From positions 1 to 64,000 of the forward strand of contig FLMG01003519.1 in assembly GCA_900088475.1 (NCBI GenBank): a DNA stretch of 64,000 nucleotides, given 5' to 3'. How positions within the stretch are numbered: the stretch's first letter is position 1; each line of letters starts with the position of its first letter. The position numbers were made by a program, and so were the translations under genes. A model generated the notes under the pieces. That model ran no database searches. It saw nothing but the letters and a program-made list of their open reading frames with translations, and was not told the origin of the DNA. Shown piece by piece: positions 29,101 through 37,300 of this stretch. Source of the stretch: Hyphochytrium catenoides (Eukaryota > Protista > Hyphochytriomycota).

Positions 29101-30862
29101 TACACGACTTCGTAGGTGGCATTTGGCGCGGACAGAGGAGCTCCGAGCAGGTCCCAGCCCTTAAGCTTCAGCAGGCATTCCACCTTGCCCCAGACGCGGG
29201 ACTTGTTCTACGGTGAGAGGATCAATCAGGTTTTCGAACGTGACGAAGCCCTTCATATGAGGAAGGTCGATACCTGGTGTGCAAGGTTAAGGGCTGATCT
29301 TTCACTGCAAACAAAGATTTCCTCGTCGTCTATCTGGAATGCTCCGTAGTCTCCGTCCGGAAGAACGAAACAGTTTGTCTGGCCATACCTGTGCGAAGGC
29401 CGTCGGTGACATACCATCAATCAGCGAGTTTTGCAATCTACAGTCCACCCGCGGTTACTCACATTGTCTCCGGGCGGAGTGTCGCGGCAACTAAGAAGAC
29501 CTTTTTGCCAGCGAGTGGGGCAAGCTTTGCTGGGAATGGCTCTACAATTCTCAATTTGATGAGTGTGTACTCTTGTGGGCCAACACCTTCTCCAGATGCA
29601 CGATCATGATCTGCACAGACCTAAGAACTCAACTTTAGTAATGAGACTCAATGCGAAGCAGCGACCAATAATGCAGGACAGCGACAAATAGAGCCTCTAG
29701 GGAAATTACATTCATTCGTGCAGAGGAACAGGATTATTTGAAGAAGGAAGAAGACAGTACTAACTTGGCCGTCGAGAGCTGAGTACACCGCTGGTCGTGT
29801 ACCAAAAAGAACTCTCTTCTTCTCCCTGAGGATGTGGAACTGCCACCGAATGAAGGAGTCATAGTAGGGATTGACACTGGTCGTGATGAACGCACGCCGC
29901 AGGTCCACGTGGAAGCCAAAGAGCTCCAAATCTTCCCTTCCCAGTGGCGGGAAGTAATGCAGCCAATAAACTGGGTCCACAAAGTTGGGAATGAGCTCTT
30001 CGGGTACCTAAGGGTAATTTGTATGTAAGACATAACTAATGAGAGTAGATATTGCTCCCCAGGCATGACTGCAGACTAGGAGGGCATACCATCATCTTTA
30101 GAATATCCCATTGATATTTCACAGCACCCGTCTTCGCTACTGCCTTTGACTTCTTGCCCTATAATGGGGATTGTTAGAGCTTCGGAGGTACAAGTAGAGG
30201 CCTAATAGGATTCGACCTTAAAAGTCCCAGGATTCTGTTCTCCCTCTGCCGGCTTCCCTTCAGCTTTGGCTTGTGCGACCGTCTCTGCAAATAAGGGGTC
30301 AGTGGTATCAACCCCCACCTCAGATATGGTATGGTATCATCATACCCTCAGCACCCTCTTCCTCCTGTTTGGGAAACTTTGGCGGGCATCCAAACTGCTC
30401 TAGCTCTGCCTTCAACTTGTTTGCGGCTGCTTGAATTGGCATACCCGAACAATGGAAGCCGTATGGGAATATTGCATTCTCACCCTTCATCTTATGGTAT
30501 CTAGGACCTCAACAACATTAGCAATAGAGGAGTTGCATGAAGTTGTTGCATAAACCTACCCGACAGCAAAGTCTGCCTTTGTCATTGTAAAGCCATGACC
30601 TAGATGAAGGCGCCCATTCATGTACGGGTACGGGAAGGTGGCAAGATACTTCTTCTTGCCAGGAATGGGGTCAGCCTCGAAGGTCCTTCCTTCTTTCCAT
30701 TTAGCTTGTACTCTCTTCTGCATATCAATGAGGTGGTCTCTCCTAGCAAAAGACTGAAAAGATGGTTTAGTGCTCACAGTCCACTGACTTGCCAAGAATC
30801 ATGATGCTAACCTTTGGGGCAGATGCTCCATCTGCGGAGCCTGACACTGCTAGCTCCGCCAT
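26107..30862 (-). CDS. LARS1: Cytosolic leucyl-tRNA synthetase
   Basis: [15 protein letters not shown] (HIGH), [46 protein letters not shown] (CP1 editing), [17 protein letters not shown]; many GT-AG introns. Confidence 0.96.
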
Positions 30863-31661
30863 CTTCGTGGTGGGTGGTGCTTCCATCCTTTAAAGCTTTA
30901 GTCTCACTCTCAATCCAGACGAAGGAATCGATTCGTTTCTCCTAGATCCGCAGTGCGCAATGAGTAGAAACGGCGCTGATGAAGCAAGGCGTCCAAGCTT
31001 CAACCACGAAGAAGAGCTTATGGTCAATGCCTCTGCGCAGCATCTGAAAGCTGAAGGCGGAAGATGTTGAGGGTTCGGATGGTGATGACTCATCACCGCC
31101 AGAGACTTTTTTCCACGGCTCTGCTGGAGACTGTGGCAGATAGCCGCTAACGATCATCATCTTGGAACTTCTACTGTACATCGGACAACGTCACTGAACC
31201 ATATGTGATGACACCATAATAATAAAAGGCCCTTATGATGTACGGAGTATGACCTTTCAGGCTAAGCGATCCTGGCTTGTCAGACACAGCTTCATCATTA
31301 AATCTTTGGATAAACCGGTCGGTCCCACAGAGGCACTGACATTAACCGGCACCGTTTGGAATAACGTAGAAATGCAAGTTGTAGTGCTGTACTTTACGGA
31401 TATTGAGATTGCTGCTTGCTACGGTCTTTACGCTGAAGTCCTGGCTAATGCTACTACCTTGTACACTTGTAAGTTTCCTATTTAGAGAGAATGTGCGCTG
31501 GGTCCGCTATTGAGCAGCGGCTTGCCATCTAGTTTGTCATTGACTGCGGAGGAGAGGGGGAGGGGGGAGGATTCACGCCTGTGGCCCGAGATGAGATGAG
31601 GGACGTCCATGTTGTAGTCACGTAGGGCAATTGCAGTAGTAACACGTGCCGCTGTACCACT

Positions 31662-33076
31662 CTAGTCGTCCCAAAGTAACTCCTGGACCCGATGAACTTG
31701 TAGCTCATTGGAGCCAGACTCCTTATCCATATGACGGAGAAACACGAGATTCTCAATCTCCCCTACTACCACCTAGACAAGACAAACATTTAGGGCTAGG
31801 GCTGCATCGAGTGAAAGAGAGTGGTCACTGTTGTTACCTCAACTGTCGTCAGAACAGTTCCTTCAATCAAGCTTCCTCCAATAACGCGACCGTCAGAATC
31901 TGACACTGCAATGTTGATGCTATGGGTCTCTCCTGGCCCAATAGTGCCCGACAATGACACTATTTCAACCGGTGCGTTGATCACAATAGTATTGTCCGTG
32001 GTGCTCTCCATCGTAGGAAGGGCTGAGGCAGTACGTAAGCTTACTGTCTTCAAGTTGCCAACCACTGTCTGAATGAAAGCAGCCTTAAGACGGTTCTTTC
32101 GGGCGAAGCTGAGAATGGTATTCTTGAGGTCTTGTCCAGCGCGTAGCCTCATCGCATACACGCGGACATGACCGCCACCGCTTGAGACAGGCAAATCCGC
32201 TGTAAAAGGGCGAGTCAGCTCAATATTACCACCCGTTTTTCTTTCCTCTAATGGACAAAATCTCCTTTTTGCTGAACGTGACGACTAAATCAACTTACAG
32301 GCCATGTAATCTGCATCCATGTATTCTCCTCCTTCTCCCAAGATACGGCGACGCTTAGGTCTTGATATCGCCGTCGGATCAGAACCTTCTAGCGCTGGTA
32401 AATTAGCAGGAGCACCGCTAAATAGGTAGAACGGAGCAAGTCAGAATACGTAACGATTGATGTATACCTCACCAGCTCACGTGAGCTCCCAGATTCTTTG
32501 CTCTACATCTTAAAGCTTACCCTTTCTTTCTCAGGCTAGGATTGGTCTTAATGTATGCCACAACTACGTTCTTCGGGATGTTTGAGAATTTTTGATGAAT
32601 CTGTTGCGTGCATACGAGTGAGCTACCGAATAGGTGGCTAGCGAAAAGGGGACCCATACCACTTGATGAACTTTGTTGATTCCAGCATAGCCAAGCTTGA
32701 CGCGATAAATCTGATCGATCGTATCAAACCATTCCCGGGGAGGACAAACCCTAAGCATGGTGCTCGTTCCTTGTTCGCTTTTGCTTCCCTGGCGAAAAAG
32801 TGCATATTTTGGTTGAGATCCATCGGGAGATGAGCAAAGACGTCTGGTAAAGTCAGTCTTTAGCATGTGCTTGAGCTTTGCAATCCGAGCTCGGTCCATT
32901 CCTTCCCATCTATGTGGGTTGGAGTCATCCAGCAGCGAAAGGTATAGGTCGTACTTCTCGTCGGTGATAATTTTCTGGGACTTCATTATGTCGGATGCGA
33001 AGACCAGCCGCTCAAACTCAGCTTTGTGGTCCTCGCGGCTGATCACCGGTTCATTGGCCACTCCCGGAGACGTCAT
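31662..33076 (-). CDS. Integrase-H2C2-like domain (zinc ligands lost) + NLS + PPC/DUF296 domain protein
   Basis: Five exons join in frame through GT-AG introns: ...EWFDTIDQIYRVKLGYAGINKVHQV|IHQKFSNIPKNVVVAYIKTNPSLRKKG|GAP...RPKRRR...YMA|SDLPVSSGGGHVRVYAMRLRAGQDL...VEIVSLSGT...GRVIGG...TTVE|VVVGEIENLVFLRHMDKESGSNELQV...DD*. Confidence 0.8.
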
Positions 33077-34310
33077 GATGCCAACCCTTAACCCTATCAA
33101 CGAACTCCAAGCAGAAGTAGACGTATCTGATGGCAAGCTCCGTCTTGCCGGGCAATCTGCACTTGTCGCTTTGATCGTCGCAGCTCTGCAGAAGAACTCG
33201 CTGAGCTTGCTCACTGGGCAACAACAGCAAAAGCTGGTGAACGGAGAAATTCAAATTCAGAAAGAAGCCAGAACAGACAAAGCCCATTGTCGATGAGAGG
33301 GCCGTCCCACCCATCCTGCCTCTATAAATAGGATGTAATATTTGCCAAAACGGGTGGGCCATCTCCTGGGTTGCCAATAATGTCAATAAGTTTGAGACAT
33401 GACAAGATGTGAATAACAATTATTCACAATACATCACAAGTAACCTCCAGGCAGCTGCTTACTTACTGCTTATCTTGTACAAAATCAATAGCTGCATTGT
33501 CAATTATGGACTCTTAGCGTTAGTGAAAGATTGAGATTATTGACTAAGCACTGAAAGGGCACAGCGGAAGGTGCATTGTCTATGGTGCTCAAGAGGTCAG
33601 TATATTTATCGGCTTATCGGCTGATCATCGCAACCGAAAGAGATTTTGAAGATGATCAGCCAGTCATCGGAGGAATCTATCGTGCGTGATAATGGGAGAG
33701 GGAAGCAAGCTTTGCATGTTGGTGACCAAGCGGTTTGCTGAAACATCTGTCTTTTCAACAGCCCAATAGCCCCACATTCGGTTCGCATCCATAAACGGAG
33801 ATCTTCTACGCCCTCGGAGCAGCTAGCTGTAGTCGATCCGCTGGGAGTGCGGCTACCTTGGTAGAGTGTGCTTTCCTTTCAGCTCCCTAAGCGCCAACAT
33901 TAGAGGCGGCGGCCGGGATTGTGCAGATCCGAAAGGTCGATCGACCTCAACTGCAGATCTCTTACTAATAATTGTTCTTAGCTCATCAGCGCACTATGTT
34001 AATGTCTCTGGCTCTCAGTTCCATCCCGGACTGAGCAATTCCTAAACAAGGATAAGAAGCGCTTCAAGATCCGTTGTTATGAGCCCTAGTTGATGTTATG
34101 AGACCTCGGGAGTTGGATAGAGAACATCTTACACAATATCTTACTCGCAGCGCAGATAGAATGATGACCATGGGTTACTCAACTTTTATTATGATCGACA
34201 CGTAGATACAAAGAAGTAGACGGACATAAGGCAACGACAAACAGATATAGCTAAAAGAAAGCTCTTCCTTTCTATCCTCCTAGAGCCATTTTGAGGAGTG
34301 AGGAAGGATC

Positions 34311-37300
34311 TTACTGAGAAGTAGCTGGTCCTTTGAGGAAGAAATTGGACAGCGAGGCTACAGGTCCTCCACCTTGCCTTGGGCCGACAGGAGTTTTCAT
34401 CGTCACGTAGTCAACTATTCCTTCTCGACTCTCGTAGGCACCAATCTTGGGGAAAGATGGTGAAGCGATTGGCGCTGCTTGTACCCTTGTACTCACGATG
34501 CCCCCCTTCTGAAACCTATCGAGTGGTTCTGTCGGTGGCATATCTGGCCCCCTGTTCCCTTGTCTTGACAATCTTGAAGCAATGACGGAAAGGCTAAGCG
34601 GAGGAGCTGCATAACTCTTCTCAAACGGTGCAGATCCAGACCCGGAGTGAATCGCACTTAAGAGTGTGCCTCGCTGTGCAGGCAATGTCGTATGACGGTC
34701 ACGAAAGTGAGGACTAATCCAGCCGTCAGGCTCCAATATGTCTCCATTCTGCTTCTCCAAAAACAGGTGGTTGGTTAACGCTAAAAGGCAGCGTCTATAT
34801 TTCGTTAACAGGTGGCTGCTAACTTTGCGGTTGGCCCTGCGCACACGCCGTTCCAAAAAGGATGGGTTGATCATCACACTTCCGACCTTGGTGATCACGA
34901 CCTCAGTGCCGATATGCTTGAAGTTTTCTCCAATCCAGCCGGGCATGGATAGGATCCCGACAATCATGTCTCCATCACAGACGAGGCGGTAGGCATACGG
35001 GATGACTTGATTGAAGATGTTTGCGAACTGGAGGTTGCCCACTCTTGGAGATCCGAAGTTGACTAGTCCAACCCAGTTGCGCAATCTGCCCTCTAGCTTC
35101 AGATCAAGTGCAGCGAGTGTGGCGAGGGCGCCGCCAAGACTGCAGATGAAAGAGAGGAGATAGTTTAGTAAAGAAGCGTCAATAATGAAGACTAGAAAAA
35201 AAGCAAATCATATAATACCTGTGTCCGGTACAGAGTATATCCCAATTAGCCGTTGGACCGCTTCTGACAATCTCCAACACGCTCTCTAGAACCTCCTCCC
35301 GAACTGCGGAATAGGCTTTCCAAAACCCCGAATGAATCTTGCATTGGCGAGCTTCGCCTTCCACAGTGAAGGTTGCCTTGGTCTTGACAAGCAGGACATC
35401 AACGCCGACGTTCCTTCAGAAACGGAGAAAATGACAGCCCAATTATGACTCAGTATTGACCCGATCCTTGCGACTACTGCTCTTACCTGAAGCTGCTCGT
35501 TCCTCTGAAGGCTATCACTATCTGTCCTCTCCCCACAGCGATGAGCCCATGAGTATCATGCTCTTCATTGTGGATATACTTCACAATACGGTAGCCTAAC
35601 TCTTCGAAGCGGAGCTCATCGATGGTAGCCTCCATCGAAGTACCAATGGCTGGATGAAGAAGTGTGACATATAGGCGCGCAATGCGTGGTGGACTCAATT
35701 CATCGAGGAGAAAAGCGATTGTAACAGGGACATAGAGATAAAACCAGGAATAAGGCCCACGACAAATTCAAGAAGACTCTGACAGGAGCCGTGTCCCCTA
35801 GCGATAGAGATTGCGGTTTTATGGCGAGTGTACCTGTTGGGGGCGGGAGGTAAACTTCATGCGAAAAGTTGAACATGTTGCAAGCAGTTTCCACGCAAAA
35901 GTACTTTTTATGCTGGGACGGGCTCTTAGGATCTTTCCCTACTTTCCTGTCGTACCTATAGAGAGGACAAAGAGGACATAAGACCGAGATATGGGTACTG
36001 GCCATCATCATTCTTCTTAGCCTGTGCATTCATCAACTTACCTCAAGGCCCCATTCTCTCGGTACACAAATTTCCTTCTGATCTTGCTCTTGCCACTGGG
36101 CACATAGAAGAAGAACGCCAAAGTCACGACCATAGTGAACTCAAAGAGCGCCTTCAATCTTGGAATGTAGGGTCTCGCCAACCCAGATACCACTAAAGAG
36201 CAGTGGTGAGGGCAGGTTAGAGACGTCACCTGCCGAGAAAATTTACGGATCATCTCACCTGAGGCCTCTGTTTCGGTAGGGACTGACTGGAATAAGGCAG
36301 GTGGGGCGAGGAACTCCACGCTCTTTTCCACAAAGTAGAGTATCAAGTAAAGGATGAGCTGCGGTAAGAGACATTGGTCGTTTAGAGGCTATTCCTATAA
36401 GATACGGAGGGAAAATAGTCGTACTCACCATGGGGCGAAGGGTGCGGTAGCTCAACTGCTGAAAGCGAGAAGAAATATAGGGGATGGGCCTCAAGAAGAC
36501 ACCCGTTCGATACAGGACGAACATGAGATAGAAAAGAAAGAGGCAGTTCATTCCGAACATCACGCTCATCATCACCACAACGAGAACTCCATCTTCAGTT
36601 GAAGTCAGGTCTACTCCGGTCATGGGGTAAGGGTCGGGCCTCTTCTTAAAGTAGAGAATGGCGCAAGCATGGACCGCTAAATGGGCGATGACATATAGTG
36701 TTTTGCCGATGTAGAAACCAGCTGTCGGAGAGGTCCCATTTAGACGAAGACCGTCCTAAACAGATTGTAGAAGATATCTTTGAATACAGGGTCCTAAAGG
36801 AGAAAAATTTAGCTGCGCTCTTACCACCAGACAGACGAGGAAGACGTTGAAAAAAACCCGTGCTAAGCCCCCTAATATTGATGAGGCTAGTCCCAGTGAG
36901 TGACCGTAAGCAGCTCCAAGCTCCAGTACCAATCCTGCAAGATTCTAAGGATGAGCGTGTCAGACCCATAGGAGGCCAGCATACGCGTGAGAGCAATGAC
37001 ACAATCCACACCTGCTTGAGAATCATTGTCACAACCAGCAAGCAGACAAATCTTCTCTCAAGAAGCCAGTTCTGCCAGCCTTTGCCAAACTTGAGCAATG
37101 CGCGCATATAAATGGCTAATGTCACGATGGACAATAACACCATAATGATAGTACTAGCAGCGAGGAAGTAGCCCCAGAAGTTTGGTGAGCCCGTATAGAA
37201 GACAGTCGGGATCGCATGCTTAGCGTTCCCTGCCAACGCGATGTTCGTTTGGCGGAGAACGACCTTCGCCGGGAATATACTTGTCGACTCGGTGGAACTA

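Follow-up and report, generated by a model that had tools for sequence, protein, structure and literature searches.

A gene of Hyphochytrium catenoides probably formed by fusion of a transposase-derived N-terminal module with a bacterial-type PPC domain

Organization of the gene

The stretch of DNA analyzed here, referred to below as the window, comprises 64,000 nucleotides of Hyphochytrium catenoides (contig FLMG01003519.1, positions 1 to 64,000 of the forward strand, assembly GCA_900088475.1). At positions 31662-33076 of the window, on the minus strand, a gene was read from the sequence as chimeric; its predicted product combines a module resembling the H2C2 (HHCC) zinc-binding domain of integrases with a PPC/DUF296 domain. 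Five exons are joined by four GT-AG introns into a frame of 1089 nt encoding 362 amino acids, which runs from the ATG at 33076 to the TAG at 31664-31662. The open reading frame (ORF) track shows two separate minus-strand ORFs at this place, 32564-33214 (216 amino acids) and 31796-32194 (132 amino acids). A preliminary description, made from the letters of the DNA alone, had bridged these two ORFs in frame by four GT-AG introns. The five-exon frame was confirmed on the sequence, and every peptide quoted in that description is present in the gene model.

Exon 1 (32660-33076, minus strand, as are all features of the gene) encodes 139 amino acids, in which helices at the N-terminus and a beta hairpin are accompanied by the first half of the H2C2-like domain, with Y124 and Y130 at the positions of the histidine ligands; its end reads EWFDTIDQIYRVKLGYAGINKVHQV. 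Intron 1 (32601-32659, 59 nt, GT..AG) lies within the H2C2-like domain. Exon 2 (32521-32600, 80 nt) starts with IHQKFSNIPKNVVVAYIKTNPSL, encodes the second half of the domain with N159 and L162 at the cysteine positions, and ends in a basic RKK. Together the two exons carry the H2C2-like module at residues 110-165, approximately (32523-32749 including the intron). Intron 2 (32418-32520, 103 nt, GTAAGC..TAG, with a CTGAC branch site) was placed by splice signals, frame and codon usage only. Exon 3 (32299-32417, 119 nt) encodes a linker that matches no family and carries the basic cluster RPKRRR (32345-32362), a candidate nuclear localisation signal. It is separated by intron 3 (32200-32298, 99 nt, GTAAGT..CAG) from exon 4 (31838-32199, 362 nt), which encodes the main body of the PPC domain, including the peptides SINIAVSD and GGSL. 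Intron 4 (31773-31837, 65 nt, GTAACA..TAG) lies within the PPC domain, and exon 5 (31662-31772) supplies its final strands and a short tail (36 amino acids and the stop codon). The whole PPC domain extends over residues 218-352, approximately (31695-32164). All four introns have GTAAGT-like donors and branch sites of the CTGAC/CTCAC type.

Codon usage was scored with a crude test whose training set consisted of the remaining long ORFs of the window. In each of the five exons only the predicted frame scored positive, the other two being negative, and the introns scored negative in 11 of 12 frame readings. Exons 1 and 2 form an ATG-initiated open frame of 165 codons, in which codon usage was coding-like in the predicted frame only.

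An imperfect 29-nt inverted repeat (72% complementary, 21-nt spacer) was noticed at 33601-33679, roughly 0.5 kb upstream of the start codon; it partly repeats positions 33023-33048.

Detection of a spliced transcript

Part of the stretch was found in the public runs of only two soil metatranscriptomes, which belong to two studies (2023 and 2025) and contain an identical contig of 265 nt. This contig covers positions 31948-32197, followed by 15 further letters, and stems from a relative with about 98% identity. Fourteen of the 15 end letters match the spliced form of exons 3 and 4, whereas three of 15 match the unspliced genome. Intron 3 is removed in the RNA of this relative, and the 3' end of exon 3 is joined to exon 4. 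Within exon 4 the contig differs from the genome at four positions, all of them third codon positions and all synonymous (4/4), which is a slight indication that the PPC exon is under purifying selection. Since the spliced contig is present in two soil studies, a close relative of the organism is transcriptionally active in soil.

RNA support for the junctions had been named in the preliminary description as a check of its gene model. Such support was obtained for intron 3 and was absent for introns 1, 2 and 4. Introns 1 and 4 are supported in another way, because the protein sequences joined by their removal align without gaps with the H2C2 and PPC domains, respectively, as described below.

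The C-terminal half

Exon 4 alone matched the Pfam family PF03479 with an E value of 3.6e-22 and 79.3 bits (cut-off 25), covering profile positions 1-109 of 117. In the PDB it matched the solved bacterial PPC proteins 2p6y (E 5.8e-15), 2hx0 and 2nmu (both about 4e-11). Exon 5 was aligned by BLASTP to residues 104-129 of a bacterial PPC protein (P0001, E 2e-6). In a local alignment the join of exons 4 and 5, ...TTVE/VVVGEIENLVF..., ran gap-free along the bacterial ...TTAE IVIGEATALIF.... By these matches, the C-terminal half was identified as a full bacterial-type PPC/DUF296 domain. The nearest relatives of the PPC exon in a word search (range 89-283 amino acids) were bacterial single-domain proteins of 131-149 amino acids from metagenomes with 39-43% identity, and protein-atlas features also placed the exon near bacterial proteins. 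A metagenome search gave no relatives of the PPC exon.

Where the bacterial proteins read H-LHIAVSD ... GGH, the domain encoded here reads HSINIAVSD ... GGS. The histidine triad is invariant in the bacterial relatives compared; its first member is kept as H298, the second is replaced by N301 and the histidine of GGH by S315, so that H-x-H has become H-x-x-N and GGH has become GGS. The preliminary description had regarded the histidines of both motifs as lost, which is correct for two of the three. Eight further residues, LPTMESTT (31997-32020, minus strand), form an insertion that none of the four bacterial relatives has and that is also missing from the solved structures of bacterial proteins in the alignment.

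The N-terminal half

No Pfam match at an E value of 1 or below was obtained with exons 1, 2 or 3. For exon 1, no relative was found among PDB sequences or in a word-index search with two length windows, and an exhaustive phmmer search of 1.84 billion representative proteins gave 0 matches. The protein-atlas features of exon 1 adjoined unnamed eukaryotic clusters (Arthropoda, Mucoromycota) with a score of 0.96; among named families PF17921, Integrase_H2C2, came first with 0.88. This pointer to PF17921 was obtained before any sequence pattern had been used and is a weak lead. AlphaFold models of exon 1 reached a predicted local distance difference test (pLDDT) value of 59 when exon 1 was modelled alone, and of 56 with seven relatives as alignment. 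The two models share four helices, a beta hairpin at about residues 91-111 and a helix that begins near residue 113, all at low confidence. A fold search with the first model gave template modelling (TM) scores of at most 0.41 and was uninformative.

Rows of Ginger2 H2C2 domains are printed in the supplement of the Ginger paper (PMC2836005), and by eye the N-terminal module shares spacing and consensus positions with them. From this consensus a degenerate DNA pattern was derived, H-x-G-x-x-K-T-x7-[FY]-x-N-[ILVMF]-x4-[VIM]-x2-[FY]-x3-C-x2-[C/H-like]. The pattern had no match in viral contigs and matched seven metagenome contigs (L002-L008), all of which have H..H..C..C in long open frames. PF17921 was matched by six of the seven, in three cases above the cut-off; the integrase core family rve was matched in addition by L002 and L006, and Znf_SCAND3 by L002. 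Because of these matches the seven loci are taken to be Ginger2/SCAND3-type transposases or derivatives. Even such intact members scored just 18-30 bits against PF17921, which explains why a ligand-less module split by an intron is missed by Pfam.

Two of these loci deserve mention in their own right. L002 (758-2527, minus strand, Ga0116229_10060713, 31% GC) carries what appears to be a complete transposase frame of the Ginger2/SCAND3 type (590 amino acids) with an N-terminal region, H..H..C..C, an rve core and Znf_SCAND3 (PF23663), and served as the best intact reference for the N-terminal module. L003 (3-1832, plus strand, Ga0314743_1000931, 63% GC) has an open frame of 610 codons, in which an H2C2 domain of the Ginger2 type with intact ligands occupies residues 196-240 (PF17921, E 3.8e-5); it has no rve core, only a long tail rich in Gly, Ser, Pro and Gln. 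L003 may represent a separate domestication of the H2C2 domain alone in another organism.

The N-terminal regions of the seven loci were aligned (alignment A1) and compared with each exon by hhalign. Residues 2-23 of exon 2 were placed on columns 120-141 with a probability of 91% (P 1.1e-6), and residues 110-137 of exon 1 on columns 90-116 (P 0.01). The two matches are collinear and gap-free across the join at intron 1, which supports both the homology and the intron. Y124, Y130, N159 and L162 occupy the four invariant columns H, H, C and C of A1, as the preliminary description had stated (H/H/C/C replaced by Y/Y/N/L). Agreement with A1 extends to positions on which the loci had not been selected, namely K143, I156, K157 and the basic residues that follow the fourth ligand position. 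In a MAFFT alignment, exon 1 was collinear with the transposase N-termini over its full length; the first 105 residues or so, taken alone, were not significantly similar to them (1.1 bits). The best solved relatives of the A1 profile were the HHCC N-terminal domains of foamy-virus and murine leukaemia virus (MLV) integrases, found in the correct region with weak E values of 0.4-0.8.

As the loci had been selected with a pattern, the 11 selected columns were masked in a control for bias, and local hmmsearch scores were compared with those of 3000 shuffles. The joined N-terminus scored 34.6 bits with the full profile (best shuffle 10.0) and 17.2 bits with the masked profile (best shuffle 8.9); none of the 3000 shuffles reached either value. 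Exon 2 alone scored 16.9 bits with the full profile (best shuffle 8.3, 0/3000 reaching the score) and 5.7 bits with the masked one (6.4, 2/3000). The corresponding values of exon 1 were 6.2 bits (best shuffle 6.3, 2/3000) and 2.1 bits (10.0, 68/3000). The frame of exon 2 ranked first with the full profile among the 2117 stop-free fragments that the window yields in six frames.

It is possible to ascribe all this to an unrelated or convergent helical domain, whose likeness to H2C2 would be due to chance and to selection bias in the comparison set. Such an origin would account for the blank searches (PF17921, the PDB and phmmer over 1.84 billion proteins), the loss of all four defining ligands and the small masked scores of the single exons. 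It does not account for the score of the masked joined module, which exceeded that of every shuffle, for the exact register in which the two exons match adjacent segments of the profile or for the agreement at unselected positions, and the atlas features gave an independent hint in the other direction. A domain of non-transposon origin is therefore considered distinctly improbable. Residues 105-170, approximately, very probably descend from an H2C2 domain of the Ginger2 type, and residues 1-170 probably descend from the N-terminal part of a Ginger2/SCAND3-type transposase. The preliminary description had assigned the N-terminal part to this kind of integrase domain and had made its reading depend on H2C2 similarity. 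The profile of seven members matches exons 1 and 2, with significant similarity at about residues 105-170.

Boundary of the transposase homology

The homology to transposases stops at the RKK that closes exon 2, exactly at the boundary between exon 2 and intron 2. Intron 2 is therefore taken to mark the fusion point, at which the part derived from the transposon would meet the linker.

At this point the model could have merged two separate things. Exons 1 and 2 would then be the decaying relic of a transposase, followed by a stand-alone PPC gene that starts at a methionine of exon 3 (MDADYMAS...), and the joins between them would be fortuitous or unused. The RNA covers only the junction of exons 3 and 4, intron 2 rests mainly on its signals, and stand-alone PPC proteins of about 130-150 amino acids are the norm in bacteria, all of which would suit two separate units. 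A dead relic, however, would not be expected to retain a proper intron whose removal restores the register of the domain exactly. Nor would one expect the 165-codon frame with its coding-like codon usage, or homology that ends precisely at the donor of exon 2. A merged model is thus regarded as unlikely.

As had been claimed before, no DDE core follows the N-terminal module. Exons 3-5 gave no match with rve in Pfam, and tblastn with the cores of the fetched transposases gave no trace anywhere in the 64-kb window. Terminal inverted repeats flanking the gene were not found within 29500-35500, nor was a further copy of the gene within the window. These results bear on the idea that the gene is cargo of a mobile element, that is, a non-autonomous Ginger2 derivative in which a captured PPC gene has replaced the transposase core. 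The genome is rich in integrase-bearing elements, which speaks for this idea. The lack of terminal repeats within 29500-35500, and of a DDE remnant and other copies in the window, speaks against it, as do the loss of all zinc ligands and the presence of introns, and mobile cargo is considered highly improbable.

Proposed origin and function

The best explanation of the locus, held to be fairly probable, is a real and expressed host gene that arose by exon-level fusion of two unrelated modules, a Ginger2/SCAND3-derived N-terminal part and a bacterial-type PPC domain. The first module would stem from the pre-catalytic N-terminal part of an integrase-like DDE transposase of the Ginger2/SCAND3 type, which consists of a beta hairpin and an HHCC zinc-binding helical domain. 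The second would comprise the 40-residue linker with RPKRRR that follows exon 2 and then the complete PPC/DUF296 domain. A transposase N-terminal exon may have been captured by splicing onto a pre-existing PPC gene, whose original start may have been one of the methionines in exon 3. The replacement of four ligands, the loss of the catalytic core and the intron inside the domain suggest a long residence as a host gene.

The PPC domain would be expected to trimerise, as reported for solved prokaryotic PPC proteins and for plant AHL proteins. In AHL proteins this domain serves multimerisation into trimers, nuclear localisation and contacts with transcription factors (PMC4209074). The RPKRRR cluster may direct the protein to the nucleus. 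Such a trimer would present three zinc-free helical modules resembling integrase N-terminal domains, which might bind to DNA or to a partner protein. RPKRRR agrees with a monopartite nuclear import signal of the classical kind, and the HHCC domains of integrases are small helical modules that serve multimerisation and contacts with DNA ends. The outcome could be a regulator of chromatin or transcription, or a binder of a related transposase or its DNA ends. The likeliest reading would thus be a nuclear PPC trimer with three zinc-free HHCC-derived modules that acts on chromatin or on a related transposon. Two more specific roles are rather unlikely: a host decoy or repressor, in which the zinc-free integrase N-terminal domains on the PPC trimer still recognise the Ginger2 transposase or its ends, and an independent, non-plant analogue of AHL proteins acting on chromatin.

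Several results weigh against a host gene of this origin and function. Pfam's own H2C2 model, PF17921, matches neither exon 1 nor exon 2, both structural models of exon 1 are of low confidence, and no orthologue of the gene was found. The comparison profile contains only seven sequences, which were found with a pattern chosen in knowledge of the query, and the similarity of single exons to the masked profile is modest. RNA shows one of the four junctions by a contig with just 15 letters of exon 3, and no transcript spanning exon 1 to exon 5 was seen in the two soil metatranscriptomes. Nuclear import, trimerisation and DNA binding are inferred properties only.

Provided that the module has kept its ability to fold and bind, it would represent a naturally occurring zinc finger that has become a fold independent of zinc. 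Standard family scans miss chimeras of this sort, as the case also demonstrates: neither Pfam nor the search of 1.8 billion proteins gave a match for the N-terminal exon.

Comparison with known systems

The stand-alone PPC proteins of Vibrio cholerae (VCA0587, PDB 2p6y) and Pyrococcus horikoshii (PH0802, PDB 2dt4) have the same domain in full length, and the identity to metagenomic bacterial members is 39-43%. In contrast to these proteins, the product of the gene has two invariant histidines replaced, carries the 8-residue insertion and an N-terminal extension of 205 residues, and is encoded with two introns. The likeness to the HHCC N-terminal domain of retroviral integrases (residues 47-107 in prototype foamy virus, PFV) is remote. 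The matched Ginger2-like profile finds the domains of PFV and MLV, but the gene has neither a zinc site nor catalytic or C-terminal domains.

Plant AHL proteins likewise have a C-terminal PPC domain preceded by a basic segment and a small module that, in the present case, is a putative nucleic-acid-binding one. An AHL-like architecture had been proposed in the preliminary description; the anatomy and the origin of the parts that it gave are supported here, and an AHL-like function would be nuclear, trimeric and DNA-binding. The gene is nevertheless not an AHL gene: exon 3 reads ...AISRPKRRRIL... and gave no Pfam match at an E value of 1 or below, no RGRP is present anywhere in the model and hence no AT-hook with its R-G-R-P core, the closest relatives found for the PPC domain are bacterial proteins of a single domain, and the host is not a land plant. 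The comparison with AHL proteins is one of analogy and not of family membership, and a DNA-binding role of the N-terminal module is putative. If the proposed function is correct, the gene would represent a second independent route, besides that of plant AHL proteins, by which a PPC scaffold has been turned into a nuclear factor.

That parts of transposases can become host regulators has been amply shown for animals and plants, but seldom for microbial eukaryotes. Domesticated transposases usually retain a DNA-binding or catalytic core with its metal sites. The mammalian genes SCAND3/ZBED9 and KRBA2 are derived from Ginger2 transposases (PMC3575427), and GIN1/Imagin is derived from Ginger1. As in these genes, part of a Ginger-type transposase appears to have been recruited and fused to an unrelated host domain. 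All of these genes still possess the DDE core of the integrase and, so far as they have been described, the zinc-binding residues as well (PMC3575427). The gene of H. catenoides differs from them in keeping the N-terminal part only, in having all four ligands replaced and in its fusion partner, a PPC domain. With regard to domestication, an intact frame was observed together with the absence of a DDE core and of terminal inverted repeats, one junction spliced in RNA and exclusively synonymous changes (4/4) in the PPC exon. No published fusion of H2C2 and PPC domains was found in literature searches. The gene is a new case of domestication of a transposase domain by fusion, which is itself a known process, and is not revolutionary. 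It departs from the usual course of domestication in that the small HHCC N-terminal module alone would have survived, with every zinc ligand lost, joined to a bacterial-type PPC domain that according to the literature forms trimers.

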